Assembly: GCA_047495785.1 (NCBI GenBank)
Contig: JBLDXI010000021.1
Span: 744,001-808,000 of the forward strand
Source of the DNA: Lepidodermella squamata
Taxonomy: Eukaryota; Animalia; Gastrotricha
Length of the DNA stretch: 64,000 bases
Reading direction: 5' to 3'
This document shows, in pieces, positions 3,001 through 64,000 of the stretch. The notes beneath the pieces are model-generated. The model was not told the origin of the DNA. It searched no databases and saw nothing but the letters and a program-made list of their open reading frames with translations. Position 1 is the stretch's first letter, and each line of letters begins with the position of its first letter. The translations under genes were made by a program, and so were the position numbers.

Positions 3001-6000
3001 CAGCATACTTAACCCGTCCAAAAGTGTCCAAAATTACCCCAATTTTCACCTGTTTTTCAGGTAAATGTCCTGCTAAAACGCGTCGACGGATTGTCATTTT
3101 TTCTTCGATTATAGGGAGAGTAAATATAGGTGAATGCTCATGCCAATTTTTATTGAAAGCTGTTCGATTTTTAGAAAGATAGAAGGGGGGTCCCAAAACG
3201 GCACCCAAAGTCTAACTGCTTGCAACTTTTTCTGAAATCCGATTTCAGCTCCAATCGTCTTGATTTTTATGTCAAACGAAAGCTGAAGAGACGGAGAATT
3301 TTATGTGAAAACTCCCATGATTTAAACGTTCAAGCCTGAAAAGCTAAACACCTGCAAAGCCGAAAGTGTCCAAAGTTACCGTGTCCACAATCATCACACG
3401 TTACGGTAGTCCCCCTCTTCGCTTTCCGCAGGATTAGTTCCGCGGTTCACCCGTACGCCGTACGGGGAGGCTTGAGATCCTCTTGAGATGGAAAATACAA
3501 TATGCATAACTTGCGTATGGTTCGCTGAAGTCAGGGATTAATTTCTTTGTCTTGGTGTTCTCATCGGCATCAGAATCGCGCTTCTTGTTGCGTTTTGTTG
3601 ATTGCTTAATTTGAGGCAATTGGTCGGATCCTGAGTCAATTCAGGTAACCCTTTTCGACTTGACGAGGCGGTAAACTTGAGAGTTACTCTGATGATGATA
3701 CGGGGAACTACGAATTTTTTATTTCTGAAAAGAAACTCAATTTTCTTGCGAGTTCTGATTCCATTTGAGAACCTTGGTAACTTAGCAAAATGGACGGGAA
3801 GTCAAATAAGCACATGAAATCCACAACACATAAGACGATGTTTTCAGATGAAATATCTCGAAGATGAACTTCGTTTAGTGGTCCGTGAAAAGAAGAATAA
3901 ACTGTCAAAGCTGAGGGTTTATTTCTCCTATGAGATCCGTCGAAACTAAGCCCTAACGCCCAAGGACCATGAGATGAAAGCGAACGTAGATGAGGTCTTT
4001 TAGCAAAGTAGCAACCTTATGGCAATAGCTAATCTTGCACTCTCTACAGTAAGCTCTGATGTCTCTGTGCATCTTACGGAGAGGATCTGCCGGAGAGGTA
4101 GGAACAGGAAAGTTCTGTATAGCAGCAGTCTTCCCAGAAGATCAATATTTACACCTTCACCAGAAACAATTCTTCCCAAAATAAGGAATGTTTCTCAATT
4201 CTCAAACCATTTACATTTCAAACCATTGGCAGCTAAACCCCACTGGGCAAGACGAGATAGAAGTTGTCAAATTCTATCAAGGAGTATCTCTTCCGTGGGA
4301 GCATGCGCAACGATGTCATCCTGAAAATCGACTACAATCTGTTCTAGGCCTTTGAATACGTTGTTTTAATCAGCTTCTGAAGCGTTTGAGAAGGATTCTT
4401 TAGACCCATAGGCATACGGACCCACGCATACTTCTCATCGTCCTACTTGCTACTTGCTACTTTCAGGATGGAGCATAATCTGCCAAAAAGCATCTTTCAC
4501 ATCTATCTTAACGAAAAAACTAGAACCATGACGTCTTTTTATCACACTATCCGACGAAGGAGGTAAACAAAATTCGGGAATAGTTTCTAGATTTGCAGGC
4601 ATATAGTCAATCGTAAGACGAGTCTTTTTAGTGTCATTATTGCCCACTATAACTGAAGCGGAAGTATGAATGGAATCTGAAACTTCTATGCACTTCTCCT
4701 TTAACGAACGATCAGTTTGAATCCTGAGCTGATTTCTTTTGTAAGGGCCTTGTCAGGATTCCTAAGACGAATTCTGTGGTAAAAATTAGGGTCTGTTATA
4801 CAGCCGAGAGAATTAGAGAATACAGATTGACATTTTCGAAGAATGGAGTGAAACTTAAATTTCAGGGTGCAACGAAGATCCTACGTTTTCGATGAATAAG
4901 CATTCATTGTTGAAAGCGGAAGTAGAAAGCGAAACAGTGCTAAGTGCTACGTATGTTATTCACACCCAGAACAGAAAGTAACAGATTGGAACACTCGATG
5001 TTAATTTTGAAGGCAGGATTAAGCAGAAAAAACAGCCAATTCTGCGACTTACAAAGGACTGCCGATGACTCTCGGGCCGGCCCGGGACTTAGTAAATCGC
5101 TAACCTCGGGCTCCTGGACATTCTTCGCAAATAATTGTCCGTCGTAATAACCAATTATCAGCGAATTTTCCGTGTTTGGCGTTATGGTGATGAACAGATG
5201 AGGTTGCCCAAAACAGTGCCCACGTAGAAAAGATTTCTTTTTGGCAATGTTTTCGTTCAGCATTGCTTTCCCACAAATGAGTAGAAAGCACGTCGACGTT
5301 TTTCAGAAAATCTCTAATATCTATTGAATCCATTGTTGATATCTATGTAGCGCACTCAATATAATTTTGCTAAACTTGGAAGACTTATTGAATTTTTCAT
5401 GGCTAATGATCGACATGTTCTTACTTGTAGAATACCTCCCTATACGTGTACCGCAAATTCACATCTGACTTGCCGATGCTGCACTCAGCGATTCCCTGCT
5501 CGTGAAGGCGAGGCCGGAATACCACCAGTTAGATGCGGCCTCTGCCAGAACACCTACTGCCACTTATACTGGGGATGCCAAGCGCCGAGCTGCAATGGCT
5601 GCCTCGGTCCTCTCACAGCTTTCACAGCCTCTTTACACGAGCTAGAAGGCGGTATGGCTGTGTCGACTAACACTGTTGAAGCTGGTCATTTCGCCACCTA
5701 TCTCAACTCGCGCTCTGTCAACCCACAAAGCGTTTTGGACGTTGGTTATCAGCTCATGGATATTAACGCTATGCCAGGTGAGACTCAGATTTTTTGCTTC
5801 TTCTAGTTATATTTTGATTGTTTCAGAGCTGAATGGAACGAATCGTGGATCTGTTGTTTGTCGTCTCTGCTTCAAGAACAAAGTCATACCAGCCATTTCT
5901 TACGCTTACAGGGCTCAACTCACTAGCTCAGATTTGCCTGGTAAATTTTTGATAATAAAATGTTTATAAATAATGAGAATTTTGTGTAGCTCCTGTAATA

Positions 6001-6178
6001 AATCGCCCGAATTGCCAGTGGGGTAAAGACTGCCGAACTCAAAAGACTTCAGTTGCTCATGCTCGGTTCGTAAAATTCCCGATTACTTATAAATAATTGA
6101 TAAAAACTTATTTATTTTTGTTACAGGAAACACAACCACATTTGCTTACCGAGTAACGGCGCTGGTCCGTCTCATTAG
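1..6178 (+). CDS. CHFR: CHFR-like E3 ubiquitin ligase, copy 1 (5' end outside window): FHA - P/S linker - C3HC4 RING - acidic exon - RGG boxes - Cys-rich domain - PBZ
   Basis: Approximate spliced exons: <1-174, 230-504, 559-1243, 1296-1517, 1869-1970, 2024-2378, 5431-5777, 5827-5940, 5990-6065, 6127-6178, GT-AG and phase-consistent. Motifs: FHA IDKSSNGT; RING CSICQELFHDPITVTPCNHVFCAGCL..CPQC; VCRQCP; HLTCRCC, YCHLYWGC; PBZ RPNCQWGKDCRTQ..HARKHNHIC. Confidence 0.92.
2635..3408. mobile_element. Non-autonomous TIR DNA transposon (MITE, Tc1/mariner-pogo type) in CHFR copy 1 intron
   Basis: Left end TACCGTAACGAGTGGTAACTTTGGACA; reverse complement of right end TACCGTAACGTGTGATGATTGTGGACA; TA at both ends; internal GGTAACTTTGGACA-like subterminal copies in both orientations (~2811, ~3024, ~3366). 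Confidence 0.85.
3650..4700 (-). mobile_element. Decayed Ty3/gypsy LTR-retrotransposon pol fragment (RT and integrase), with stops and frameshifts
   Basis: Minus-strand translation gives RLTIDY...KIDVKDAFWQI, YAWVRMPMGLKN, VVDFQDDIVAH (YxDD-equivalent), KCKWF...LGRIVSGEGV; then integrase-like FPSILLSYQGSQMES and SPYHHQSNSQV. Confidence 0.85.
5040..5333 (-). mobile_element. Frameshifted Helitron-like Rep N-terminal fragment
   Basis: Two overlapping frames join into FLKNV..LWESNAERKHCQKEIF / FGQPHLFITITPNTENSLIIGYY, resembling the Helitron_like_N G-x-P-x-LF-x-T motif (recognised from memory, not searched). Confidence 0.6.
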
Positions 6179-6433
6179 TCCGAAAACTCGCGCTTTGTTG
6201 ACATGAATGTTGTGAGTCCACCTCGAATAAAAAAGCGAAAATCATTCTGATTCTGGGGATTAATTGCTCGCATGTGTATGATGCTTCTTGTCTTCGCAAC
6301 ATGTATCTCTTGAATTTTAGCAATTATAAAAAATATGCTAGCTGAAAAGTATTATCCAATGATGTAATAAACTTCTAACGTTTTCTAATGCCCTTCTTGT
6401 CTAGATGTATAGCTTTTAGCGTTATTATGTATT

Positions 6434-8266
6434 ATGGCTATTTGGGGTGAACTGCTCTATAAAGGCGGCCGGACGGTTGGCGTTCATTCGCTAAGGACGC
6501 ACTCGATCACGATTGGGTGGGGCGATAACGCGCACATTCGCCTGTACAATCGAGGCATATCGTCCATTCATTGCCGCTTGCTATGGAACAGCGAGAGATC
6601 TATCGTCACTATTATCGATTTTAGTAGAAATGGTACATGGATTCAAGGCCGCGACGACGTTCCAGATAAACTGCGTTGTGGACAAGAAAGAGTCATCAAT
6701 CATAACGATTGCATAGTTTTAACTTACGATCGAAATCGTTCACCTGGTATGGAAGAATTAGATTTGCCTCAATCTGGATAATTATTCTATATATCTGGTT
6801 CAATATATTAGATATCTGGTTCAAACTTCGAATTTTGTTCCAAGTTCCGAGGACTGCGCCTCGGAGAAGGCAATATGAAGAGGTTCCAGCTACCGATGTC
6901 CAAGTTCCGAATGTTTCGACTTATGAGGCTGCTACTGAAAATCCTCGTGATGTATCGCAGCTAACGGTGCCAACAAAAATTCGGAAAATCGAAGACATCG
7001 CAAGCTCATCCGCCAACGAAGCTGCGTCTACCTCAAAAATCCCGATCTCATTCGTTGAAAATAACTTGATTTGTTTGATATGCCAATCGATCCTATACAA
7101 ACCAGTCACATTGACCCCTTGCAGCCACGTTTGCTGCGGTAAGTCGACCTGAATTCATTAATTAAAGCGTTATTATGATGATTTTTAAGGTGGCTGTCTA
7201 GCGACGTGGTTGAGGACTTCTTTGGGGTGTCCTCAATGTCGACAGCAACTCACCCACGTTGCAGAATCTCATTTGTTGAAAAACATGGTCGAAGAATTGG
7301 TCAAAGCCCATCCGCAACTGGAAAGGCCTGAAGATGAACGGACAATGTTAGATCAGAAATTGTTCGGTTTGCGACATCCGCGACATCCAGGAAACCACCT
7401 GTTAGGCGGAAATAAGACTCCAGGTACGTTACATGATAAATTCGAGTACAGCCGCCTTAAATTTATTTATATCAGACCCGGATAAATTACCCGACGATTT
7501 TTTGTGCCGCCTTTGTCCTGGTTCACTGCCAGCCAGGAGTTTAATCCCATCCAATGGTTCCTGCTACCCATTACCTGAAACGACCTCGAATGACCCCTGC
7601 CTTCCATCCGGAGAACATGAAATCTGCGACTGTTGCAATCAGGTCTTTCCGAAACGCGGCGATATGGACCCGGCCGTGAGAGTGAAATGTAAAATCTGCG
7701 AAGGGACATATTGCCACATGTATTGGGGATGTCGCAGTGAAGCGTGCAAAGGCTGTCTTGGTCCGATGAAAACCTTCAAAGTCCAGCTTAATCATCTCAT
7801 CAGGGGGCTGGCAATGTTTTGCAATCATACGGAATCAATGATATTGCTAGAATACCTTCAAAAGAACCATATCGAACCTGCTGCAGTGTTTCAACGTGGT
7901 CTGGATCGCCTTGAAGCGAATGCGAACGCGTGTTTGTGTTTTAGGTCGATGTTAAGTTGAATCGAATAATTTTGCTTTCAATTTCCAGATTGCCACAACG
8001 TTAAAGCTAACGATCCCGTTTGCCTAAAGTGCATGCGTTCGATCATTATACCATTCATTGCGTTCGACTATCGAATTCAATTGGCGCCATCTGAACTGGA
8101 ATTTCTGATGCCACCGCGTCGGAATTGTCTTCAAGGCAGGAGATGCAATCGAAAGCATGAAGAGAAGCACGCTGAGTTAGTTGCGATTTAAAACCCATTT
8201 GCAATTTTCTATGTAATTTTTCTTTGTTTCAGGAAGTTCAACCATGCTTGCGAGTCGATTGTCTGA
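6434..8266 (+). CDS. CHFR: CHFR-like E3 ligase, copy 2 (compact): FHA - RING - Cys-rich - PBZ
   Basis: Exons ~6434-6746, 6812-7138, 7190-7423, 7476-7931, 7989-8175, 8233-8266. FHA ISSIHC..IDFSRNGTW; RING CLICQSILYKPVTLTPCSHVCCGGCL..CPQC; LCRLCP; HEICDCC; YCHMYWGC; PBZ CLQGRRCNRKHEEKHAEKFNHAC. Several intron positions shared with copy 1. Confidence 0.9.
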
Positions 8267-8764
8267 AATATTTCGAGGTCGTAAATCTGCCGTCCATTGG
8301 ACTTCCTTAACTGAACTCTTATTTATTGTTGAATTTATGAATTGAAGCCTCTAACCTCTAACCTCAAATAGAAATTGTAAAGCATGTGCCATTTTTCATA
8401 TTTATCAAGATCTCGGAAATTTCGCTCTACGCTCTAATCATATTCATTTTGTTTGAAATCAGAAACCAATGAATAAAGAAGTTCTGATATTTACTTATTC
8501 TTCTATCATAGTTGATATTGAATGGTAAAGAATGATGACATGCGAGACCTGGTATATCTTAAAAAATGTTATGTTTGCTGAAATTGCTGGAATTCCGGAG
8601 ATATGGCGATAATTATTATATTGATTGAAATTTTTGTTATTTTTACAATTTTAAAAATGTTTATGACAATCGTCTGAAAAGATAAATTTGCCATTCATTC
8701 AATTTCATTTTTATTTTCTGGTGTCTATTATAGGGCCAGTTGTTAGTTATTTTTGTATTAATAT

Positions 8765-11700
8765 ATGGCGACTAACAAAAACGAAGAAAACGCCCCTCGC
8801 ACCTCGGCATCCTCAACTAAACGGTCATCAAATGACGGAACTGTTGTGATAGGTGGGCGGAAAAAACAGGCCCTTGGCGCCCGCACCGAATCAAATAACG
8901 CAGGTGGATCCGGCGATTTAGCGGCGGCGTCAGACGCCAGTCCGCCGACTCTAGCCATCGCAGAACACCTGACCTGCAGCATTTGCACGGAAATTTTTCA
9001 CGACCCTTGTAATTTATCGCCTTGTAATCACGTGTTTTGTGGTAAATTTTTGGAAAATTCAAAAATTCGAAAAATATGAATTTATGAAATTTTTTAAGGT
9101 GGATGTTTATCGCCCTGGCTAAAACAATCAAATCAGTGTCCACATTGCCGGCAGCGGTATAATAACTTCAGCTTTCACCACATGATCGCCAACATGGTTC
9201 AGGCGTACTTGACAAGTCATCCGGATCGCAGGCGGTCCGCCGAAGAACTGGCCCTACTCGACTCGCAAAACACGATACCGAAAAACAATCAGGAAGCGGC
9301 AGCTCAACAGAGGCAAAACAATTATTCGGACGATTCGGACTCGTCAGACGGCGATGCTGTTCCTCAAGGTTTAAATTCAATTCCTGGAGTCATAAATATC
9401 CAAAATATTGTATTTTAAGGTGGTGCTCATCATTATGCTATCTCTTCTGAGGATGAGTATGAAAGCAGTGCAGATGAGTATGGCGGCACTATTACTTCAG
9501 CTGAATCTAGCATATCTGCATCGGACTACGAAAACGAGTCTGAAGTTGAGAATGAGAGCGACCTCGCCGAAGAGGCAGAAGAAGAGCATGTTGAAGTTGA
9601 GGAGCACAGCGATGCTGAAGATGGCGCGAGTAGTCAGTCGTATGTTGACACTGAGACGAGCGCGGATAGTGACGGGTTGGATGGCGAATTCAACAGCAGT
9701 GCCAGCGAGCATTCTCAATCTGAAAACTACGCGGATGGTGAGTTTTCACCCCCTTGAAAATCGTTGAAAAATCTAGATTTTTTTAATATAATTTCTAGGT
9801 TCTAACGACAACTATGAAGACGAAGAAAGCGAGGATTCTGACGATTATGTTGAGCCTCAGCAAGTTGGAATCGATAGTTCAAGTAGTGAAAGTGATGACT
9901 CGGATGAAGCGCCTCCAGTTAGAGGTGAGTAGAAGGAAATCAAGCTAAAGCAGCATTCAATTTTAGTACATCTTCGGAATTCCAGCAATTTCAGCAAGCA
10001 TAACTAGTTTAAGATGTACCAGGTCTAGCATTTATCTCATTAAGCATTATCTAGCATTTTTTTATTCATTTCCTTGATCGAATTCGTTCGCTACCACGAT
10101 TTTGTATAGGCATTTCATAAACCTAACAAAGCACCGGTGTTTGAGCTCTGGGAGTTGGACCCCGGTAAAAACGATCTTGAACTGTGTCCAGTCGATCCAG
10201 GGTTGAAGGTGCCGCATAGGCATAGGCAATCATTCAGCCCTCTAATATGGGCCAGCAGTAGGTTTTGAAAGCATTTCCAATCTGCCTTTTTGAAAGGAAC
10301 AGTTGAAACCTGAGTAGTTGTGTAGTGTGACCACCTCGAATGGAATACGGTATTATGATCGAACACATGCCTTGATGCAAGCGTAATTCGAGATTATTTA
10401 TCTCGGAAGGCAAGAATGTTCGTATCTGGGTACATGATGAAGTGAATTACAGGCGACAGAGAGGCCATATCCGAAAACGCGCTCTCCTGGTCGTTGTTAC
10501 CAGCCTTCTCCGCATCGCTGGAAACGTCAGAGGAACCGGACCGGGAAAGAAGTCGGCTTACGGGAACGTCGAGCTGGCTGTTGTTTCGCCCGAACTTACG
10601 ACCCTTGGAAGAGAGTTTTAGCGCTGGGATAGAATGAAACAGAATGGAAATGTTGCTTGGGAAGCAGTGTTGACTGAACTGCTTGGGGCGCATTTCATAG
10701 CGCCTGGAATCTGAAACGGCGGCTTCGGGGTAATAACTAGAATCGGCAACTAAGATATGCTTAAAGAGACGCGTGTATGCTTCTGTATCTTCACTACTGC
10801 CATCTGAAACACCTGCAACCTGTAACCACCAACAACCCCGTGTCAGGTTTCCGGAGGATTTTGTACGTCGCATCAACTTGAAACCTTGTCCACTTTCTAA
10901 TTTAGAAAGAAATTACCTTGATGAAGCGATTATAACTTCAAGTAACGCAATCAGAATATTACGTTAAATTCGAAGACCGGTTTTGAATATATGCTGTTCA
11001 GACATAATAGATATAAAGGACAATGGAATAGTCATTGTTAAGGAAGATTTGAGATTCGACAGCTCTTTGCGTTTGAAAGAGAACAGATCTACACTTAGGA
11101 GTTTGATACGAGACGGGTTTAGCAAAAACAGCTGAGAGAAAATGAGGGTCAGTAGAAAGGAATTGGGATATCTAATATTAGCATTATGGACATTTTAAAA
11201 AAGATCGGAGCTGGAGGAAAGCTAAGAAGGTGTAACAAAGAGAGACGCACAATCTAGGAGCCATGCAGCGACTTCATTTGTGAGGCTTACAATTTAGACT
11301 CAATCGAAGTGCATTCGAAGAGACCATTTTCAGGCTTGTGACTACAGCCAATGGCAGCGCAACAAATCATATTTTATCAACTTGTCTCTAAAGCATAAAA
11401 TTACTTAAGTTAACCTAAACTACCTTTAAATTACTCATCTCGTTTAGATTGGACAGTTTGTAGGCTCAAAGTGCGACATGCGATAACCCTTTCCGATTTC
11501 GAGTGGCGCGAAATTAGTTCGGTGCGATTTGATTGCGGAATTGAATGCGGAAAAATATTTCATACAAATTTTATTTGCATAATTTATTTTGCGCGATAGT
11601 TTTGGAGAAAACTGCAAAAATTATTGGAAGTGATCGATTGCGTGTGAATTTACTCAGTACGAAATGCTGCTTATGAAATTATAATGAATCAAAACATTAT

Positions 11701-18367: not shown

Positions 18368-20297
<1,930 letters not shown>

Positions 20298-22125: not shown

Positions 22126-24941
22126 ATGACTTGCAATTTAAGTTTATTTGACACTAGTCTGGAAAAGGTGGTCGAATGTCTGGAGAAACGATATTCGAAT
22201 TTTCTCGGTCCGAAAATCTACACGAATTTCGGCAGCATTTTAGTTGCTGTCAATCCTATTTTCTTGTCCAGTGAAGAGTACGCTGGCCTTTATGGACCTA
22301 GCGCTCTTTCCAACAGCAATGATGCCCATATTTTCGCCATAGCAAAACGGGCCTTGGATATGATTCGCCCAGGTTCGCAAGAAACCGTGGTTGTTATTGG
22401 CGATAGCGGCAGCGGGAAAACTGTCACTGTCGGCCATGTTTTGGATTATTTGACCGCCAACTCACGCTCGGTTAGCTGAAATTACGGTTGCAGATTCGTT
22501 CATTGATATTTTTTGTTTTTAGCCGATTTGCGAAACGTTCTATCAAAAAATCTTGAAGGCGTCGCACCTGATGGAACTTTTTGCTAACGCTCAAACTTGT
22601 CTCAACACGAATAGCTCTCGTTTCGGGAAACTCATCTCGCTGGTCTACAACTGCGGGCCTGTCCCTCAATTAGTTGGCGCAGAAGTGGAAGCTTTTTTAC
22701 TCGAAAAATCACGCGTAACGTCGACCCCAGAGCCTGAAGGCTGCGGAGAAAACTTCCACATTTTACGATTGCTTGTTTCGAAATTGGAGGATCCGGCATT
22801 GTTCGAGCGAGTATTCGGATTTCGGCGTCAAAAATTGGTATCTGGCGAATTTTCATTCAGAGTTGCGCCTTTCTGTCCAAATTTAACGGAGAAATGCTTT
22901 TCTTTCGATCGAGCTCGCCATTTGCTGCAAATCTTCGGATGCGACGAGGAAACGCAAGCCGAGATATTTAAAACTCTCTCAGTCATTCTTCATCTTTGTA
23001 ATTTGGAATTCATTTCTCGCGACGAATCGATGGGATGCGAAATTGCCTATCATTTGCCAAATGTTCATACCTCTGTCTTGTCCCTCCTTTCCCTATTGGG
23101 AATATCCGATTGCCGAGAAATTCAACAGGCTTTGACTACGAAACCAGTGTCAGCTTTATCAGCTCGAAGGCAGAGTGTTTATCGTAAACCGTGCGGAGTT
23201 GGAGAATCCGAAGGGCGACGAAATTCACTGGCTCGTCTTCTTTACTCGCAACTTTTCGAATTTGTCATGCAAAAGATTTGCTCATCAGTTGCCGCAAAGT
23301 CGTCGAACGCAGGAAAGGAATCGCGAATTTCCGTCCTTGACATTTTTGGGTTCGAAAATTTCGAAAGAACTCACAACGATTTCGAGCAGTTATGCATAAA
23401 CTTTTGCAATGAGAAAATTCAGCAGAATTTTGCTCGCATTTGCATAAGTGATGTTAGGAAAGAATTAACTGCTGAAGGCTTGTCGCAAGATTCTGGCGAG
23501 TCCAGCTACTCCGAGAACGATTCAGTCATTGCGCTATTCGAAGCGTCACCCTCGGGTATTTTCTGCATTTTGGACGAGAAATGCCGTTTAAATAGGACAG
23601 GAATCGCCTCTCCGAAATTGGCACCGATCGCATTAATGAGTGGCAAAATGACAAAATCAGTGGCCAACACATCGCCATCTCTTCAATCAAGTGATGATTT
23701 CTACCAGACCTTATACCACAATTTTCGATCCGGTTGCAACAAAAAGATCAAGCTTTCAACTGTCTCTCAACAGTGCCAATTCACGATATGTCATTACGCT
23801 GGCCCGGTTGTGTATTCTTGTGAGAATTTTGTCGATAAGTCAAGGGTAAGACTTGTTATAATTATTGTTGATAAATTTTCTCAATTCAATGTTTAAGGAT
23901 GATGTTTCTCCTGATTTAGTCGCCTTTTTCTCGCTCAATGTGAAAAATTCCTTCGTTTCTTCACTGCTGAGTGCGAAGGCCAAATCAGAAACAGTGAATA
24001 AAGCGACTCCATTAACACCTCAATCGACCAATAGCGACGCGATAACTGTTCGAAAGCGCAGCCTAGCTGCAAAATATCGATCGGCGACCACTCAACTCGT
24101 CAATTTTCTCAACAATTCGACAAATGTTCACTATGTCCGTTGCATCCGGCCTAATGACAAGCCAGCAAGTGTTGAGAGGAGTGTCGCGGATCGTTCCTTC
24201 TCCGCGGAGCACGTTTCAGCTCAACTAGCCAGCGCTGGTCTTGTCGACGTTCTTCGCCTAGCAAATGCGACTGGGAAATTGACGCGCCGCCTGTCTTATC
24301 GAGCGTTTGCTAACGGCTTTTCGCAGCTTTTCAATGTTTTCAACGTCGATTTTGAGCCGGGTGTTGACGTGGAAGAAGCTGAGGATAAAGAAAACTTGAA
24401 TAAGGTGGAGAAAATTGTGGTAATCCCCGACGAAAATCTGAAGCGGCAAGTTCGTAAATTCTGTGATATTTTCGCCCTTCAACCGAATGACGAATTGTTT
24501 TTCGGCAAAAGCAAATTGTTTCTCAGTGATCAATTGCTTTCGTTTTTCCGACGCCTCCTTCTATTCGTTCAAAGGTCTGCCGCCTTGAAACTTCAACGAA
24601 ATTTCAGGAAGTCACTTGAAAGGAAAAGGCTGAAGACCCAGATGGATTTGAAGAAAAACTGCGATTTCGTTGACATTCCAGTTGAAGCTAATCACGACGA
24701 AGTATTTGAAGATTTGTTGCCGCCTCCTCTTGTTTACAGCTCATCTTACGTGCCTGATTTTTCTTCGTTTTTCATCGGCGATGGAATAATCTCAAGACGG
24801 CGCCATTTTTTGACGTCCAACGGCCAAGCTAGCGGGCTTTTTTGGTTCCATGTCAGGCCGAATCCGTTGCTTCCGAAAGCTCATGTTGTCAATTCAAAAC
24901 TTTTCTTCCAACGCTCCAGCGTCACTGACTGCCTCGATTAG
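22126..24941 (+). CDS. MYO19: Unconventional myosin XIX (mitochondria-associated myosin)
   Basis: Exons ~22126-22470, 22523-23844, 23898-24941. P-loop GDSGSGKT, NSSRFGK, DIFGFE, FEQLCINFCNEKIQQ, HYVRCIRPN; one IQ motif; short tail DGIISRRR...FHVRPNPL resembling the MYO19 MyMOMA tail. Confidence 0.85.
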
Positions 24942-33442: not shown

Positions 33443-36400
33443 CTAATGGTGATGTGACGGGGGCATCCCGGGATTTTGCAAGACAATGGGCTGTAAGAGC
33501 GGCGGTGGCGTCGGCACTGCAAAATGGTGGTGCGGCGAAAGACTTTGCAGCGACGTCGAGGTCGAGCCTGGCTCCGGGCCCAAGTTCCTGCAAAAAACAC
33601 CACAACCGCCTTAATTACAAGCCCTCGCCCGCGCACTCTCTCTGACTGGCTTACTTCGTCTTCGGCCGCAAGTACTCGTCGATCGATAACTGCATCACAT
33701 CGGGCCGTTCGTCCTTATTGTATAGAAGACAACGCCGAATGAAAGCCTAGAAACAACAAAAATAAAAAATTGAGAAAATTTGATTTGATCACGTTAACAA
33801 CTTTACAAGTCATCGTGATATTTTTTCTCAAAATTATGAAATAACAAAACATTACTAGAACTCGCACCAAAATTATAAAAGGCATGGTCACGGCTGTTAT
33901 TTTGATGTGACGATCCACAAATTAAGCATTATATATTCAATCCAGAGTGCTTTTTTATCCACGTGTGGATGAAATGCTCTGGTTCATCAAAAAATTAAAC
34001 TAGAAAATGACCATCTAATTGATTTGCCCTAATGGGATTTTTCCAATGTAAGAAACGAATGGAAATCTCACCTTAGCTTCACTGGTAACAGGAGGTTTGG
34101 CAGGGAAGTGGACCTCTTTTGCATTGAGAATGACTTTTTCCTCGAGAATCGACGCCTGGCTCATGTTGTGGCCGAAAGGCTTGCGACCGTACAGACACTG
34201 GTAGAAAATGACACCCACCGACCACACGTCGACCTTCGAGGAGATTTTCGGCGGCACCGATCCGGTGACGAAGCATTCCGGCGGCAGGTACCAGTAGGTG
34301 CCCGCGCCCTGAGAGGTGAGCTCCATCGCACCGTCCTGCACTTTGTCGTCCTCCATGATTTTACTGAGGCCGAAATCAGTCAGTTTGATCTCGCCGAACA
34401 GCGAGCTATTGCCCATCAGAATGTTGCCTGGCTTCAGGTCGTAGTGGATGACCGGAGGTTTGATGTCATTGAGATACTTTAGCGCAGAGACAACTTGCAC
34501 AATGATTGAGCGCGCCTCACGTTCCGGAAGTACTTTACTTTGCTTCAAATGGAAGTCGAGGTCGTTACCCTCGCAGTACTCCATAACGGTGCAGAAAGAA
34601 TTAGAGTCTATGTCGAACACGTCGAACAACCGAACGATGCGAGGGTGGTCCAAATTCTTGTGGATATTGAGCTCCCGGAACGCGTGGCGTATGTAGTTCG
34701 CCTTCTTCTCCTCCTTCCACTCTTTATTCAACTGGTGGATCTTACACGCGACGTATCGAATGTCTTGCAAGTCGAAAGCCTTGTGCACCTCGCTGAAGCC
34801 ACCTTTGCCGAGCAGATTTAATAATAGATATCTCCGATTCAAAATAGTGAAGGCGTTGTGACTATCGTAAAAAAAAACGCACAGCAAGTAATTATCGATT
34901 TTTTGATAAAAATCGCGTAAACATACGGAGAATTATCTTCATTCTGAATGCGCTTTATTTCACGAATGTGGAGATTGCGTTCGCGTTCGAGCTTTTCAAG
35001 TTCGAGCTGCAAATCTGTCTCCTCCTTCTTGAGCGCAGCTTGCCGCAGCCGCATTATTTCCTCCTGCTCGTGATAGTCGTAAATGTTTAGCCTAAAACGT
35101 AAATACAGCAGGTACATCATCATACGCATGTACTGTCGTGAATAACAAAACATACGGATCGACGATAGAGCTCTTCGGAGTTTTAGATGAGGTGCCCGGT
35201 GTTGTGAGGACGGCCGGTTTTCGTTTGAGAAGCGCACGCCGTTGCCGCTCGATTTCGTCCCGCTGTTCGCTGCAATGAGCTTGCCTTTTCGCGAGTTCTT
35301 TGAAAGCAACACCGTCCACCCAGGTTTCGACGTATTGAGACCCTTGCCGCTGCGTGATGAATTGACCGAGGCGATAACTGTTTTCCACCGATTGGTGACG
35401 AGCGTTTTTCCTTTCGAGGTCGCTTTTCTCTATGAGCAGCTTTTTTAGAAATTCGGCACATCGCTCCAGTTGTTCTTTCTGCTTCTCGTTTTGCCGGGTT
35501 GAACTCGCATTCTGAACTTTCATTTGCTCGCATTCCTAACAAATACACAATAGAGTTGTTGAACAAGCCACCAAACACACAAAAGGATATATTTTAGCGC
35601 CTTAATTGGCAGCTTTGTCATAAATTTGATGTAGCAACTGAAAAAATTGGAACCAGTCATTTAAATAGACTGGGCACAGAGTGCTAGTTGCTATAAAACT
35701 GAGTTTTTAAATATATTCTTACCCGGATCAATTGCTCGATCCGCGAATCTCGGGCACCAATGTCGCTGGCTGATTGCTGCACATTTCTATGCATTTCCAG
35801 CATTGTCAAATCCGTTTGCACCTCCCGACTGACAGAACGGCTTGATGACGAAGATGAGTAAGGACCAGACGAGGGGGTTGAACCAGATGACTATAAGGAA
35901 GAAAATCAACATTAATTCAACTGGAAATCCAAGACCCAGAAACAAACAACATAATGTACAGGAGACTGGGCGGTAGGTGTGCGGCCAGGGCTGGTTTGGC
36001 GAAAATAGTCGATAATTTTTTTGCCGCCGTCTTGCTTGCTGACTTTAGCCGCTCCAGAAACTATATGTATCAGATCAGTAAGTGAAGGAAACTGAATGTA
36101 ACAAGGAAACTTACGACAGTTGTTGTCATCACGAACTTTTCTCCGCCGACTCTTTGTTTCAGAGGACTGAGGAATACTATGTTTCGACTTTTCAGGGGTC
36201 TAAGCAGACATTAATCGTTAAGTAAGCAAAAAATCAAAACAAGAGCTCACTTGATTCAAACTCACGTCTGCCTCTCCAGGGCTAGACTCCGTATTTGTTA
36301 TACTGAAAGCACTCTGTTCCGAATTGTCCACCTCAGAACCGGGCCCATTTATAGGCATCACATTAGGCATAGAAAGAGAAAGATTTCGATTCGATTGCGC

Positions 36401-52269: not shown

Positions 52270-53705
52270 TATTTTTGGTATTATTTATTATTATTTATTC
52301 AAGAGCACAAATCCCAAAGTTGAGAGCTCATAGAAAAGAAAGTTTGCTTGAAGTAAAAATTAGTAGCAGATTATCTTGTCAATTCGGTCCGTTTCAGCAT
52401 CAGTATTTCCAACAAAGATTCAACAATTATAATTTTTTCAGATTAGGTTTAGATAAAAAATATTTATAAACAAGTTGACGGCAAGAAAAGGCATCGTAGC
52501 AAATTTTGAAACCACAATCACATCTTGGCGGTAGGTTAGTGTAGTTCATAATGTCGATTGGGCGATGATGAGGGCAGTGAAAATATAAAGGTAGAGTGTT
52601 GAACAGACTAGGACCGGTGAAGCTAAGAGAGGCCTGACCGTAGTCCAGACGCATACGCGGTATTTTGAATGAGAGCTGGGAATAACGAGTGCGAGACGGA
52701 GGCTTCAGTACAAAAATAGATTTGATGGACACAGGCGCGTCGCCGACAACACAACGGTACATGAGAGTAGCAATATGTACATTACGCTTGCCTTGCAGGT
52801 CGAGCCATTCTAATTCATCACGAAGAGGAGAGGCGTCAGCGGAATCAGAAGCATTCATAATTATTCTCACTGCTTTGTCCTGAAGAGATTGCAATCGTTT
52901 CAAAGATGTGTCACAAGCTTCACCAAGTAATACATCGCAATACTGTAAATGAGAAAAAACTAGACCATTAGCCATTAATTTCAAGCAATTCCTGTTCAGT
53001 CCGTTTTTAGACGCTAGATGAAGAGCAAATAAGCCTTTGCGAGCTTAGGTACAGGCCTTGTCTATTTGCTGACTGTATAACAGTTTTTCGTCGAGAATGA
53101 AGCCTAGAAGAGTGATAGAGTTGGTTTGATCCAGCGAGTTATCGTTAATACTTATAGAAATTTTTCTGGCGGATTTACTAAGCGAGACTATCATGAGCTG
53201 CGATTTCTTACCGTTAACCTTAAGACAGTTTGAGCCTAATAACCAGTTGATAACATTATTAAGGTCGTTTTGAAGTACTGATTCCAATTCAGAATCATTT
53301 TTGGCAGCAAAATAAATGGTGGTATCGTCGGCGTATTGGATTACGGTGGATTTTAGTGATGAAAGTGGCAGCTCGTTAACATAAATTGTGAAAAGTAAAG
53401 GTCCCAATACAGAACCCTGTGGCACTCCATACTTAAGATCAGCTGTGTTCGAAATTTTTCCATTTACTTTGGTCAATTGTTGGCGGTTAGAAAGATAGCT
53501 AGTTAATAATTCGATAGCCGGCTCGTCGAAACCTGCACTACGTAAAGATGACAGAATACCAGGCGTGGTTAAGGTGTCAAAGGCTTTACTCATATCAATG
53601 CTAACTATCGCGATTGTCAAACCTTTGTCAAGAGCGCAACGCCAGTCGTTTGTCATTTTAGCTAGGCAAGTTTCGGTAGAGTGGTGCTTCCTAAATCCGA
53701 ATTGT
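52270..53705 (-). mobile_element. 5'-truncated LINE (CR1/L2-group) RT copy with one in-frame stop
   Basis: QFGFRKHHSTET, SIDMSKAFD, GVPQGSVLGPLLF, QYADDT, LGFILD; ORFs 53045-53656 and 52427-52984 are in the same frame and separated by one TAA; A/AAT-rich tail near 52270-52297. Confidence 0.92.
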
Positions 53706-58597: not shown

Positions 58598-59255
58598 CGA
58601 TTTGATGCTTATAAACAACTAATTGTCCATACTCTCCTGAAGAGGCTGGTTATTTGTTAGTCTTACTGATGGCTGTCAAATGAATCATTATTCCCAGGCC
58701 ACGTCGACTCATTGCGTGCCTGGACAGCTGGCAGCCTTACCTTTTCCTCTCACGTCAAGGAAAAAATGCCAAACTCGCTTATTCCATCCGTGTTTACATT
58801 AACACCGGTTGGTTCTTACAGGTATTAGTCACCTTGCTGGGCTCCATGCCAAATGTTTATGTCACCTTGTGGTTAGTGATAAGCAGCTGATAATTGGATT
58901 ACGCATTTTGGTTAAATTCAACAAGATTAATGATAACATCAAGTACGCAGTCCAAAAAAAAACAAAAGCTGACGAGAAATTTTTTTATTCTTGTTTTTTG
59001 ACAAAAGTTTTCCGGGAGAAGAAAATAATATTATTATTTTTTGCAAATGCAATGGCTGTGAATTACACGACTGAATTGTCTGATCTGTTTGGTATCTAAT
59101 TTATCGCCTGTACAACAGGCCAGCGGGTATGTCAGAAATCACAATCACAAAAAGAACTGAGTTACACTTTTTTGTTTTGGGGAAGACGAACGAAGCACGT
59201 TTATCAAATTCATCTCTCACTAATTTTCGCATCAGTGCGGCTCGTTCACGATTTT

Positions 59256-60988
59256 TTACTGGAGAGGAGAGAACGGAGTCGGGATCAAGATGCGTGAGAC
59301 CATCTTGCGGATGAGCGGGACTGTGTAGGCGACGTTTTCATCCCAGCCCGGGTGCCGCCACGCCGCTTCACGAGTTTCTTTGCGCGACTGCATGTCCTTG
59401 TAGTTCCACAAGTGATGAACGGTGTATAGATTGCCCATCTGTTCGAACCTGTGAGGCAAATTTGAATCCAAAATTGAGGCAATTATTCAAAAAATTATAA
59501 AAAAAACTCTCATAAAAAATCAAATGAAATTCAAAAATTCTCACAAAAAATCAAGAATGGTACAATAAATCTAGGAAACCTATTGCATTATTCGAATCAG
59601 AAAACTATTTAATTACTCATTTTCAATCAATTTTCAACCGATAATATATTTCAAAAATTCCTTATTTCGACCTGCGGTCTATTCTAAAAAGTGGTCGAGG
59701 ATTCAGGATATATTTTCCATTTTTTTTTATAAATCGCGAATGTTATTTTTTACATAAAAAATTCATCATAATTTTCAAGATTTTCACCGCAAAGTATTTG
59801 TTCTGGGTTGAATTTTTCAAATAAATTTTTAAATTATTTTTGCTTACCAGCCGCTGACGGCTTCGTTATTGAGCTGTCGAAATTTGATACCACGCGCCCA
59901 CAAATTGCCCCATTCGATGAGGTTACCAGGTCGCAGTGAATAAGTTCGCAGTTCGTAGATGGACGGTTCCGGTCCAAAGAGTTTACGCGGTTCAGGGTCG
60001 TTCCAGAACGAGAATTTCATCATAATAAGGTTGCGACGCCTGTCAATCAAGCGATTCCGCTCCTTGCGGAACTCGACAAAGTCCTTGTCGGTACGGTACA
60101 GATGCGTGGCCTTGTGCAGATCGCTGTAGTCATTGTATCGCCAGATGTGAACTTAATAAACGAAACAAAGTACATCATTTATGAGGTCTGTCTACATCAC
60201 AGCGCCGCCACACCGGCCGCCACAAAGTGCATAAAATGCGGCTTGAAATGGCTAATATACAAAACAACGTTTATTTTATCGCACTGAATCAGTCACGCGC
60301 ATACTCAAATACATAAAAGACTGCGTTCATTATGTTAACACTTGCTGGTATAAATCATGCATTCTCTCGCGGTACCTTGCACCCTGTGTGGGCGTTTTTT
60401 TCCGGCACCCTTATAATATTGTTAATAACATTACAGCCAAGATTTTTTGCTATTAGGCGCTACATGTGTTTCATGTGATACAACATCGTCGTAAAACAGA
60501 AATAATATAAGAAAATAAACTAACTGGCTTCGTCTTGGTCGCCGATCTCGACTGTCCAGCTGCCAACGAGTTCTGCGCCAGTTTGTTTAGCATTGATCAT
60601 AGAAATGAAAGAAGTACTGAAAAAAAATCATTTGTTTAAGGTGGACTATTTGTGGCTTTGAATTACTATTGTTTGAGATATTCTTCCATATAGCGAGGCT
60701 TGACGTGGTGGACTAGAAAAGGAATGCTTGAAACATGATTGGGAAGTCAATTACGCATGGCTTACTTTGCATTTCATAAGTGTGATGCGACTCAGCCAAG
60801 CGAGCTGCGTGAGGTCCGACAGCGACCTCGCCTGAACCGCCCTGTCGGTCGAAAATTTTACCGAGCCAGCCTTGGCGGCCGCCATCACCGGACTCATTAA
60901 GCCTCGAGGCGGTCACACTCAAGTTTCGCGTCGCCGCATTTCCAGCGCGTTTCAGAGCCACGACGAACAATTGAGCGGGTTTTAGCAT
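59256..60988 (-). CDS. NIPSNAP: NIPSNAP family mitochondrial protein
   Basis: Mitochondrial presequence-like N-terminus; five exons; [77 protein letters not shown]. Confidence 0.94.
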
Positions 60989-61312
60989 TATTTTATCTAG
61001 AATTATATCTACGCGGAAGGTAAACTTTAATTAAAACAAAACTATCTATCACATTTTATTGTCATCTTTTCTTTATATACTTTGATTTACAACAGCTTGA
61101 CATGGTGCAGTTATGTTTCTGTAAAAGCCACAGCCAAAAAGCAACAACACACGCGGACACAACAGGAGGTGCTGAAAGTTGCAAAGGCAGCCATGACAGT
61201 AAAAAATAGCAAATCTCACTCTGCAAAAGCCACACTCAAAATACGATTAAAATGTAACTGAAAAACGAATTCGATATCGCAGAACAACTTTAGTTTGCCA
61301 GAAATTATGCGT

Positions 61313-61597
61313 TTAGTCGTCATCCTCATCATCGTCCTCCTTATGCACGAAAATGTCGTTTTCTTCGAGAAAATTGGCTCCTGTTTTGCTGATAGTTGCG
61401 CCGAGGAATACGAATGGCACGACAACCGCAATGATCTGGATAGTCTTGAGTTTTTTAATGAACGGTTTGGGCAAAATAGCTCCGGATTGGGTCGTCACAG
61501 TTCGCAGGGCGTTGGCAGTTGCCGGAGATTGAATCGTTTGAAGTAATAATTTATTTGAGGATGCAAGGACGCTGGTACGAACCAGGGATCGCAGCAT
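61313..61597 (-). CDS. SMDT1: EMRE (essential MCU regulator)
   Basis: Presequence, TQSGAILPKP, TM with VPF..GATISK.GA.FLEENDIFV, acidic tail EDDDEDDD; intronless. Confidence 0.93.
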   Translation of the reverse strand: MLRSLVRTSVLASSNKLLLQTIQSPATANALRTVTTQSGAILPKPFIKKLKTIQIIAVVVPFVFLGATISKTGANFLEENDIFVHKEDDDEDDD

Positions 61598-62144
61598 TGT
61601 AAATCGTTTATCAAAAAGTGACTCTAAAAACATAAAATAGCCAGAGTTATATTCAAGCTTTCTTTAAATGTTTATTTCTAGGTATTATTAAGCAGATAAT
61701 ATTGGTCTCAAGCGTCGAAACATGATTGCAATCAGATCAAAAATAGTTGCATAATTGAATAACTCACTTTGTAACCTTTCAATAAGCTGAAAGCAGCAGT
61801 ATGGCAATATAAGCACAGTCGAAATGTTAATATATTCGTTGAGGAAGTTTTCATGCACCATGCGTGTGTACCAAAGCTAAAAACTATGTTTTGTGTGTAC
61901 AAAATGCCGGAACTGTGTCCACGACACATGAATTGGAATCGAGTTGACATTGCAATGTTTCGAGATAACAGCAAGCATCAAAAGATAAATTTATCGTAAA
62001 AACAAACGTGGCAAGCAGATCACATTCTGCATTGTAGCGAGATGATCAAGTTCAACAGAAAAGCATTAACGTGGTCAGTATTCGATCAAAGTCACAGGTA
62101 AATCTGTCAGCTTTGCGATAGTAAGTCTTTGAAAATGTTGGAAT

Positions 62145-62660
62145 TTACTGGACCGAAGCGGAGAGACGCTTTTCCTCGGCAATCTCAACGGCGGTTGGAA
62201 GACGGATTTTCTCTTCTGGCTCAACATGCTGCAACTTGTTGGCTTCGAAACTTTCAATCTTCTGGCGAAGTTCGGCTTCACGTTTCTCGTTTTCAATGTC
62301 CTCCGGGGTAGGGAGAACGGTTTTCTCCTCAGGTTGAACCTTGTTCAAATTCTTCGCAGAAAACGATTCAATGCTGGTGCGGATTTCGATTTCACGTTTC
62401 TCCGACTCGATGTCATCAACGGTTGGTAGACAGCTCTTCTCTACAGAGAGAACTGACTTGAGGGAAGGGCGTGAAGTGTGCTCAATCTCTGAGATGACAC
62501 CTTCCTTGACTATTTCGGTTTTCTCCTGGATCAAATCGTCTCTGCTTGGCAACACATTTTTAATTTCGGTGGAAACTGGTCGGAGTTTCGGCTTATCAGA
62601 TTCGGCAACTAGCTTAGCGATCACCTTGGCCTGTTCAGCATCAGCAGTGGTTGGTTCCAT
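62145..62660 (-). CDS. Four-repeat beta-thymosin/WH2 actin-binding protein (tetrathymosin/ciboulot-like)
   Basis: Four repeats of L-x-x-V-x-x-x-(E/I)K-x-x-LP-(S/T)-x-x-(D/E)-(I/L)-x-x-EK; intronless. Confidence 0.9.
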   Translation of the reverse strand: MEPTTADAEQAKVIAKLVAESDKPKLRPVSTEIKNVLPSRDDLIQEKTEIVKEGVISEIEHTSRPSLKSVLSVEKSCLPTVDDIESEKREIEIRTSIESFSAKNLNKVQPEEKTVLPTPEDIENEKREAELRQKIESFEANKLQHVEPEEKIRLPTAVEIAEEKRLSASVQ

Positions 62661-64000
62661 GTTTCAATGAAAAAATCTTGATTACAATAAGTTGGCTATC
62701 AAAAACACATAACACATAATACAAAATAAGTATATGGAGACAATTAACAGAGGCTAAAATCTGCACCAATAAAGGATCACCGCCAACCGTCAGAATGTAG
62801 AATTAAGTATCACCCATACAAAACCTTCCTATAGCCTATCATAGAACAACCCCAATTGCACGTGCGAGGTGACTAAATAGAGTCTTATGGTATAGGCGAA
62901 CACATGCAAGTTCTTATTTATGTCAGCGATCATCATCAGGGTTGTTGAAAGAATAGAGGCCCTCGTCGCTTTCTGGCTCATTCGACGAAGTAATGAGGGA
63001 CACCCATCAGCATCAATGAATCAGGGATTATTCATTCTTCAATCTTCGATTTGCAGAGCGTTGATTGCCAACTGCAGAATGTATGAATATGGAATGCGCA
63101 AAGCTGGAGAAACGTTAGGGACCTTTAGTAGAAATCCGGTTCTGAACACCTGGATGACAGCGCGTAGAACAACCAACAAAGGTCGAGGGTCGAGGGTATA
63201 GGAACATTTCGCGGGCATTCAAAAACTCCGCATTAGCGACTGGGAATAACAAATAAAATATGTTTGAAAATTGAGCTGAGCAATTATGTGCACAGAAAAT
63301 TTCTTGTTGGTGAAGGTCAGGTTACGAAGGAATACAAAAATCTACGCTCGAGAGGCTCCTCCTAGCTGCTTTGAGTTTCGCGGTGCCCGCGATTCGAACG
63401 CTGTTCTGGTCGCTGGCTGTTGGCCAAAAGTCGAGTGTTCCCCATTCCTTCTTATGGTAACCGTTCATGCAATTCGATTAACAGTGATCAATCGCTTATA
63501 TTTGTTATATCACTATTCAGCAGTTCAAGGGCTGGCTTTCGACAGCGAGCATTAAATAATTAGCCGCAAGATAACTAATCAGGGCGCATAATTGATTGAT
63601 TAACCGACTCTCGACTCTAGTAATATCACACCCGATTTGGTGGTTATCTTGCGGGGAATTTTCATGTCGAATCTGATCTCTCATTAGATAATACTTATGG
63701 CGAATGCATGTTAGCGATCTGGTGACAAAACTCCCAGCTTAGGGAATAGGGAACTTCAAATTCATTTTGACTAAACGCGCATTTTCAACTTTTGAAGTCG
63801 TTATTTATCCATTTGTATGCTTTCCTCTGATCGAATGTGTTGCGGCCTAAATATATCTCTTTCCTTTGTGTGTAGCTCTTTCGAAAGACGCCTTTATTAT
63901 CCATGCGATTACTTATTTAATAACAAATATAAATTTTATGATGCTTGTTACGATACAAATATAGTATCTTATATAGCAAGATTGCAATGAAGATGAAAGT

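Follow-up and report, generated by a model that had tools for sequence, protein, structure and literature searches.

Spliced leader (SL) trans-splicing and operons are distributed patchily over the animal phyla, and whether they had a single origin or several is an old open question. A genomic locus in Lepidodermella squamata, a gastrotrich, raises this question anew. A first-pass annotation of the window, a stretch of 64,000 nt analyzed here as a whole, had proposed an operon-like chain of thymosin, EMRE, and NIPSNAP genes in which poly(A) signals lie at a fixed distance from the next trans-splice acceptor. Do the transcripts of this locus carry a spliced leader, and are the three genes transcribed together? 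Our RNA evidence consists of assembled contigs of public runs, whose RNA status was guessed by a tool; the features of the contigs agree with that guess. In particular, runs X1 and X4 behave as RNA, with four GT..AG introns skipped and zero depth over introns and intergenic DNA. These contigs support the SL trans-splicing interpretation of the first-pass annotation, and we consider it probable, at roughly 70%, that thymosin, EMRE, and NIPSNAP make up a unit of three minus-strand genes with one upstream promoter region, resolved by polyadenylation and trans-splicing.

Gene order and gene identities

The three genes follow one another on the minus strand in the order thymosin, EMRE, NIPSNAP, and open reading frames indicate opposite-strand genes on both flanks. 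All features given below lie on the minus strand unless the plus strand is named. Pfam matches above the curated thresholds bear out the names proposed in the first-pass annotation, and each of its motifs is found where it had been placed on the minus-strand sequence. The thymosin CDS (62145..62660; 171 aa) is intronless and encodes four beta-thymosin repeats, with a match to Thymosin x4 (PF01290) at 96.8 bits against a cut-off of 24.8 (E 5.9e-28). The EMRE CDS (61313..61597; 94 aa) encodes a protein that matches the DDDD family (PF10161) with a score of 76.3 bits (cut-off, 27; E 1.5e-21) and is predicted to have a presequence-like N terminus, a single transmembrane helix, and an acidic tail. 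The NIPSNAP coding region (59256..60988) comprises five exons (60988-60766, 60712-60667, 60616-60525, 60151-59846, and 59446-59256), delimited by contig joints that are all GT..AG and adding up to 858 nt, or 285 codons and a stop. Matches to PF07978 score 77.6 and 30.6 bits against a cut-off of 22.3 (E 9.4e-22 for the last exon); family support was obtained exon by exon, exon 4 included, rather than with the exons joined in one query.

A single relative of EMRE, at 46% identity, lies on a 1.1-kb contig without informative flanks, and we found no relative of thymosin at E <= 1e-5. Look-ups of the exact EMRE and thymosin protein sequences returned no record, and NIPSNAP exon 4 found nothing in metagenomes.

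At the downstream end, the NIPSNAP 3' UTR (59029..59255) is delimited by contig ends that fall between 59059 and 59029, with an additional AATAAA beyond them at 58989-58984. A convergent plus-strand gene, ADAM-like, follows. At the upstream end, the region 62698..63900 presumably holds the promoter and outron of the thymosin gene; X1 contigs are of low depth at 62702-63049 and absent at 63050-63397. Because the neighboring gene, with ORFs from ~63945, lies on the plus strand upstream of thymosin, the presumed thymosin promoter would be divergent.

A shared leader on the thymosin and EMRE mRNAs

Contigs of run X1 place the same leader, which is foreign to the window, on the mRNAs of both thymosin and EMRE. 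We refer to this leader of 24-26 nt as SL-A (ATCTGCGAATTTGATTTGTGTCTAAG). At EMRE, X1 contig 2 (61066-61625) carries 23 loose letters that are SL-A, joined at the AG of the TTTTTAG acceptor (61624..61625), so that the first exon base is 61623 and the ATG (61597-61595) lies 26 nt after the AG. This is the junction at which the first-pass annotation had predicted a leader. Trans-splicing at 61623 eliminates from the EMRE mRNA an in-frame upstream ATG at 61633, the start of a 106-aa ORF. At thymosin, the contigs are collinear over 61652-62697, and SL-A recurs as the loose end of X1 at 62697, which identifies the acceptor AG (62696..62697) and the first exon base at 62695, 35 nt 5' of the ATG at 62660. 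In other runs the same thymosin junction carries a second leader, SL-B, in X4 and an SL-B-like variant in X2; both leader classes are thus used on thymosin. The X2 variant has no match in the L. squamata genome and is therefore either an error or derived from a related strain or species. Overall, one leader not templated by the adjoining genomic sequence is joined to the AG acceptors of two unrelated mRNAs, as expected of SL trans-splicing.

For NIPSNAP, where a second leader junction had been predicted at 60996, the evidence is of a different kind. In X4, the spliced contig 21 starts precisely at 60998, the AG of a CTAG motif (60997..60998), and has no collinear upstream sequence; it displays no leader of its own. 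A start at this position is expected if both leaders, which end in ..AAG and ..GAG, are used there. The contig start is suggestive of trans-splicing at 60997|60996, with 60997..60998 as the probable acceptor, 60996 as the first exon base, and the ATG (60988-60986) 8 nt past the AG.

The acceptor motifs resemble cis 3' splice sites, and the AGs could in principle be ordinary acceptors joined to upstream untranslated exons. Against this, the 64-kb window contains no copy of a leader at up to 3 mismatches, and among the SL-B copies listed for C21 the nearest is on the opposite strand, ~60 kb ahead of the window. Moreover, two genes bear the identical leader. We regard ordinary cis-splicing as extremely improbable.

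Leader genes in the genome

The first-pass annotation had proposed a search for SL RNA genes consisting of a leader, a GT donor, and an Sm site, and the genome holds genes with leader and donor for both leader classes. Genomic matches to the 3'-terminal 22 nt of SL-A number 45 at <=2 mismatches, versus 0 for a reversed control; in 44 copies the leader is followed by the GTATGT donor (GTATGTATC). The SL-A genes are arranged in arrays with a spacing of roughly 0.6-0.9 kb and have an upstream block in common. Across 17 paralogs the SL-A exon and donor are identical, and the terminal stem varies with its base pairing preserved. The SL-B leader has 562 genomic occurrences, 394 of them followed by the donor GTTAGTATC (reversed control, 0); the SL-B gene sits in the spacer of an 8.46-kb rDNA unit, beside 5S. 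When the RNAs were checked for an Sm site, SL-B RNA presented a single-stranded AUUUUAG followed by a strong terminal hairpin, and SL-A RNA a conserved terminal hairpin with no clear U-run site. In both classes, SL-A and SL-B, the leader thus forms the 5' exon of small genes present in many copies and has a splice donor directly after it.

These genes bear on the concern that the leader is an artefact, namely a chimeric contig, template switching during SMART cDNA synthesis, or contamination. Adapters of SMART type do occur in X1 contigs, as do some "opposite strands" joints. Against this, two AG acceptors bear the identical 24-26 nt, the leader is itself genomic, with a consensus donor after it in ~44 (SL-A) and ~394 (SL-B) copies, and the independent runs X4 and X2 also carry a leader at the thymosin junction. 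An artefactual origin is accordingly very unlikely.

Poly(A) site, acceptor spacing, and the operon model

The 3' end of the thymosin mRNA could be mapped. The X1 loose end at 61652 consists of an A run and cDNA adapter, where the genome reads on TATAAC. Two genomic A's leave the position of the poly(A) addition site ambiguous within 61652..61654, so that the tail begins 17-19 nt downstream of the AATAAA signal at 61671..61676. Downstream of the mapped site, a U-rich intercistronic spacer (61626..61651) of 26 nt separates cleavage from the EMRE AG, and the first exon base of EMRE lies 28 nt from the site. The value of 28 nt falls within the intercistronic gap of 25-35 nt put forward in the first-pass annotation. 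Thymosin and EMRE, which lie on the same strand, are thus separated by the short distance between poly(A) site and trans-splice site that marks an SL-resolved operon.

Between EMRE and NIPSNAP the distance is known from the candidate AATAAA signal of EMRE (61055..61060), a sequence motif, to the AG, and amounts to 57 nt. The X1 EMRE contig ends at 61066, and DNA contigs of run X3 also break, at 61076/61077; the breaks in this interval are probably due to polymorphism. The corresponding signal-to-acceptor distance for thymosin and EMRE is 46 nt. The spacing is therefore similar and not, as had been proposed, fixed, and it comes from two cases. The window contains 138 AATAAA hexamers, or ~1 per 930 nt per strand. 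Because of this frequency and the two spacings at hand, the motifs alone would be weak evidence; what lifts the locus above chance is RNA, namely the leader at the EMRE AG, the non-genomic poly(A) tail, and the start of the NIPSNAP contig.

In the operon model, all three genes would be transcribed from the promoter region upstream of thymosin into one primary transcript, which would be cleaved and polyadenylated past each AATAAA, with coupled SL trans-splicing at the AG a few tens of bases downstream of each cleavage. EMRE mRNA would be polyadenylated ~15-20 nt beyond 61055, and NIPSNAP mRNA would receive its leader at 60997|60996. Such a unit may co-express two mitochondrial proteins, as the first-pass annotation proposed. 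We infer co-transcription, because the polycistronic precursor is absent from the contigs: none bridges either spacer, and no X1 contig lies in 61626-61651, although contigs drop rare forms.

A different possibility is that each gene is trans-spliced but has its own promoter within the preceding 3' UTR. The genes would then form a tight cluster that is not an operon, or else a "hybrid operon," and trans-splicing would do no more than trim outrons. The thymosin and EMRE 3' UTRs, of ~490 nt and ~270 nt, would offer room for such promoters, and the lack of bridging contigs fits as well. Thymosin exceeds EMRE 6-20 times in contig depth, a poor measure; this very unequal depth is in keeping with separate promoters and does not suggest tight co-expression of the two genes. 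In addition, thymosin as the first gene is itself trans-spliced, and trans-splicing is thus not confined to downstream genes. Separate promoters are harder to reconcile with a mapped poly(A) site just 28 nt from the EMRE splice site, with the opposite-strand genes that bound the unit, and with the fact that such spacing is typical of operons in other SL-using animals, for example Macrostomum lignano with a peak at ~100 bp (PMC8629364). We consider separate promoters unlikely and favor the operon model.

Discussion

The locus shares features with operons of several animal groups. As in Caenorhabditis elegans operons of SL2-type and SL1-type, the genes lie on the same strand, and the upstream gene's 3' end formation appears to be coupled with trans-splicing of an SL onto the downstream mRNA; further points in common are multicopy SL RNA genes, one class of which is 5S-linked, and a U-rich spacer. 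In contrast to C. elegans, L. squamata has leaders of 26-31 nt that show no relation in sequence and a spacer of 28 nt, as compared with ~100 nt in the nematode. In the small sample of two genes, no leader class specific to downstream positions was seen: EMRE carries SL-A like the first gene, and thymosin also carries SL-B. A pattern search of the genome with the SL1 22-mer gave no match. The Rfam models RF00198 and RF00199 (nematode SL1/SL2) also had no match, a weak result since control models matched nowhere either. The nematode SL1/SL2 leaders were discarded as candidates.

In tunicates such as Ciona and Oikopleura, intercistronic regions of operons are tiny or absent, and a separate SL2-like class is not known (PMC1488885). 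The L. squamata locus resembles them in its very short intercistronic region and, in the two genes seen with a leader, in the lack of a separate class for downstream genes. It differs from them in leader sequence, in the possession of two leader classes, one of them in the rDNA unit, and in belonging to a spiralian lineage.

Gastrotrichs and flatworms are sister phyla (PMC11660948). As in the flatworms M. lignano and Schistosoma, the SL RNA of L. squamata is ~100 nt long with a leader, a GT donor, and terminal hairpins, and flatworm operons likewise mostly contain 2-3 genes (PMC8629364). The heptamer CTGCGAA is common to the L. squamata and M. lignano leaders; it is a lead only. Unlike the M. 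lignano leader, which has 35 nt and ends in ATG, those of L. squamata lack an ATG and terminate in AAG or GAG.

Rotifers and chaetognaths are small spiralian or gnathiferan animals that, like L. squamata, have SL trans-splicing. Chaetognaths have operons, and several leader forms occur on the same genes (PMC2481426); by inspection, their leaders are unrelated in sequence to those of L. squamata (PMC2481426). The rotifer leader GGCTTATTACAACTTACCAAGAG (PMC3795323) is not present in the L. squamata genome at up to 3 mismatches, and this leader test does not support a rotifer as host. An Atlas search and a TLK search yielded no usable placement; annelids and molluscs at 76-80% and bdelloid rotifers at 68-72% were the best hits with a name.

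A literature search with 11-17-mers from SL-A and SL-B gave nothing relevant, and searches combining Gastrotricha with trans-splicing or spliced leader found incidental co-mentions; we came across no paper that reports trans-splicing or operons for the phylum. It would be a bolder claim, and one we hold to be distinctly unlikely as a whole, that the locus provides the first RNA-supported operon junction in Gastrotricha together with a two-class SL system sharing ancestry with flatworm SL trans-splicing. If true, SL trans-splicing and operons would go back to the ancestor that gastrotrichs share with flatworms instead of having originated separately.

A clear gastrotrich case would in itself add a data point on the origins of SL trans-splicing and operons, because flatworms are the sister group. 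L. squamata supplies the sequences of the leaders, the genes that encode them, and a junction of poly(A) site and acceptor that has been mapped. The published annotation, derived from direct read mapping, may misplace mRNA 5' ends and operons; the sequences of SL-A and SL-B permit the true mRNA 5' ends and the operons of the L. squamata genome to be annotated.

Results

Organization of the gene block

Thymosin, EMRE, and NIPSNAP follow one another on the minus strand, and Pfam matches bear out these identities from the first-pass annotation, with four thymosin repeats at 62660-62145 and EMRE/DDDD at 61597-61313. The next gene upstream of thymosin lies on the plus strand, from about 63945, and an ADAM-like plus-strand gene converges on NIPSNAP from downstream, so that the three genes form a closed same-strand block preceded by about 1.2 kb of DNA. 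The motifs claimed earlier are present in the minus-strand sequence: AATAAA (61676-61671) and TTTTTAG (AG at 61625-61624, 26 nt before the EMRE ATG at 61597), followed by AATAAA (61060-61055) and CTAG (AG at 60998-60997, 8 nt before the NIPSNAP ATG at 60988). Signal-to-acceptor spacings, proposed to be fixed, are 46 and 57 nt, which are alike, but not more than roughly. As sequence features, these signals and acceptors would be weak evidence by themselves; in the window, each strand has an AATAAA about every 930 nt.

Spliced leaders on thymosin and EMRE transcripts

The RNA data consisted throughout of assembled contigs from public sequencing runs, aligned to window positions 58700-63900. Two of the runs, X1 and X4, have the features expected of RNA: their contigs skip all four GT..AG introns of NIPSNAP (minus strand; 60765-60713, 60666-60617, 60524-60152, and 59845-59447), depth is zero in the long NIPSNAP intron and in intergenic DNA, and X1 contigs bear poly(A) and cDNA adapters.

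The X1 EMRE contig (61066-61625) stops at the predicted AG and continues into 23 letters absent from the window. At AG 62697-62696, 35 nt before the thymosin ATG, the X1 thymosin contig stops likewise, and its loose end consists of the same 23 letters and one extra. The common non-genomic leader anticipated at the EMRE acceptor is thus joined there and also on thymosin; this leader, SL-A, reads ATCTGCGAATTTGATTTGTGTCTAAG in mRNA orientation, the AG belonging to leader and genome alike. The X4 thymosin junction carries a different leader, SL-B (…CTGCGATTGAATATTAAATTTTCTGAG), and an SL-B-like variant occupies the same position in run X2.

A further X1 loose end at 61652 is an A-run not found in the genome followed by adapter, which places polyadenylation of thymosin mRNA at 61652-61654, 17-19 nt past its AATAAA. 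The EMRE exon begins at 61623, which leaves a gap of 28 nt, in agreement with the estimate of ~25-35 nt. No X1 contig lies inside this gap, as judged by bin depth, because the two flanking contigs fully account for that depth.

For NIPSNAP, a shared leader is probable. The first base of the spliced X4 contig is 60998, precisely the A of the AG predicted there, but the leader is not among the loose ends listed for run contigs on 58700-63900. Two leaders with the endings ..AAG and ..GAG on one exon would make a de Bruijn contig start exactly at this position, and we infer that NIPSNAP mRNA also carries a leader.

Leader genes

SL RNA genes were sought in the whole assembly (121,234,032 bases in 151 contigs; L50 13, N50 3.62 Mb; GC 41-43% in the window), and genes with leader and GT donor, as the first-pass annotation had envisaged, are present for both classes. 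The last 22 nt of SL-A match the genome 45 times at <=2 mismatches, versus 0 for a reversed control, and 44 SL-A copies have the donor GTATGTATC directly after the leader. SL-A genes form arrays on contigs C17, C19, C54, and C11, with a spacing of roughly 0.6-0.9 kb, and have in common a block that lies about 35-55 nt ahead of the leader. Among 17 distinct paralogs, leader and donor are invariant and the middle is variable; the terminal hairpin stays paired despite 10 one-sided and 1 two-sided changes at one pair, with further changes scattered over other pairs. No clear Sm-type site was found in SL-A RNA.

The SL-B leader occurs 562 times in the genome, 394 of these followed by the donor GTTAGTATC. 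SL-B genes repeat every 8.46 kb, which is the rDNA unit. In the repeat at L045 (G000:C2:2909500-2919499), 18S (2223-4039), 5.8S (4440-4592), and 28S (4810-8529) are on the plus strand, and 5S (302-420 and 8763-8881) and, beside it in the spacer, the SL-B gene (near 1117-1145) are on the minus strand; about 394 SL-B genes show this pattern. SL-B RNA has a single-stranded AUUUUAG ahead of a strong terminal hairpin.

SL-A and SL-B are exons of SL RNA genes. Both are absent from the window at <=3 mismatches, so joining occurs in trans. An artefact or cis-splicing is excluded: leader genes exist, the junction recurs in three runs, and the leader is missing in cis.

Many dispersed SL-A and SL-B copies lack a splice donor after the leader and run instead into a short UTR and a 170-480-aa ORF (L002, L019, L022, L027, L029, L034, L038, L041, and L043). 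Three of nine scanned ORFs behind such copies encode zinc knuckles of the CCHC type seen in LINE ORF1, and some upstream flanks resemble element tails (simple repeats, G-rich runs, and partial leader repeats). These copies may derive from trans-spliced LINE RNAs by retro-copying; alternatively, LINEs may have inserted where leader and donor meet in SL genes, carrying the leader along.

Other features of the window

Database relatives of the unit's proteins are almost absent. The only relative found for EMRE, 46% identical, is on L031:1-384 (Logan contig, run SRR34431284); it has an acceptor-like motif (TTTTCACAG) 92 nt before its ATG and, in its 5' region, the letters CAATTTGATTTTGT, which resemble part of SL-A. 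At 59391-59867, DNA run X3 splits into two haplotypes with roughly equal depth, one identical to the window; in the region 61076-63900 its allele differs by about 0.5-1%, with small indels. Some X3 alleles also occur in the RNA runs. Together, these patterns suggest marked heterozygosity in the clone. A Tousled-like kinase exon lies at 34015-34887 (minus strand; L044), and a 96%-identical protein is encoded on a 48-kb ENA metagenome scaffold beside phosphoribosyltransferase (Pribosyltran) and DEAD-box helicase genes. The window also holds a reverse-transcriptase fragment (RVT_1; 53045-53656, minus strand), one tRNA gene (18665-18736, minus strand), and two myosin-head exons (22553-24941, plus strand).

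Discussion

The thymosin-EMRE-NIPSNAP unit probably works like an SL-resolved operon. Most likely, the three genes would be transcribed together, as a single precursor that starts upstream of thymosin, with cleavage and polyadenylation following every AATAAA and the downstream mRNAs each receiving their cap through trans-splicing at the AG that comes next; EMRE would have a poly(A) site of its own. X1 contigs have low depth at 62702-63049 and there are none at 63050-63397, which would fit an outron start near 63050. The main rival explanation places promoters within the long 3' UTRs of the first two genes (some 490 and some 270 nt); trans-splicing would then do no more than trim outrons. Contig depths are unequal between genes, although depth cannot rank genes, and no bridging contigs between genes were seen among the run contigs; even with these points in its favor, we consider it rather unlikely.

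Two features set the unit apart from a C. elegans SL2-type operon: EMRE receives the leader also found on thymosin, and the spacer measures 28 nt. With regard to leader use and spacer, the polycistronic unit proposed here would be nearer to tunicate, flatworm, and C. elegans SL1-type operons. The M. lignano leader (PMC8629364) has only the heptamer CTGCGAA in common with these leaders. The rotifer leader is identical across three rotifer species (PMC3795323); this leader, at <=3 mismatches, and nematode SL1 are both absent from the genome, which argues against rotifer and nematode hosts. The Lepidodermella squamata genome paper (Roberts et al. 2024; PMC11660948) does not mention operons or trans-splicing, and we found no report of SL trans-splicing in gastrotrichs in the literature searched.

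The EMRE outron contains, 12 codons ahead of the start codon, an in-frame ATG (61631-61633, minus strand) that trans-splicing strips; ATG is absent from both SL-A and SL-B. DNA-based gene callers would predict a 106-aa EMRE rather than the 94-aa one.
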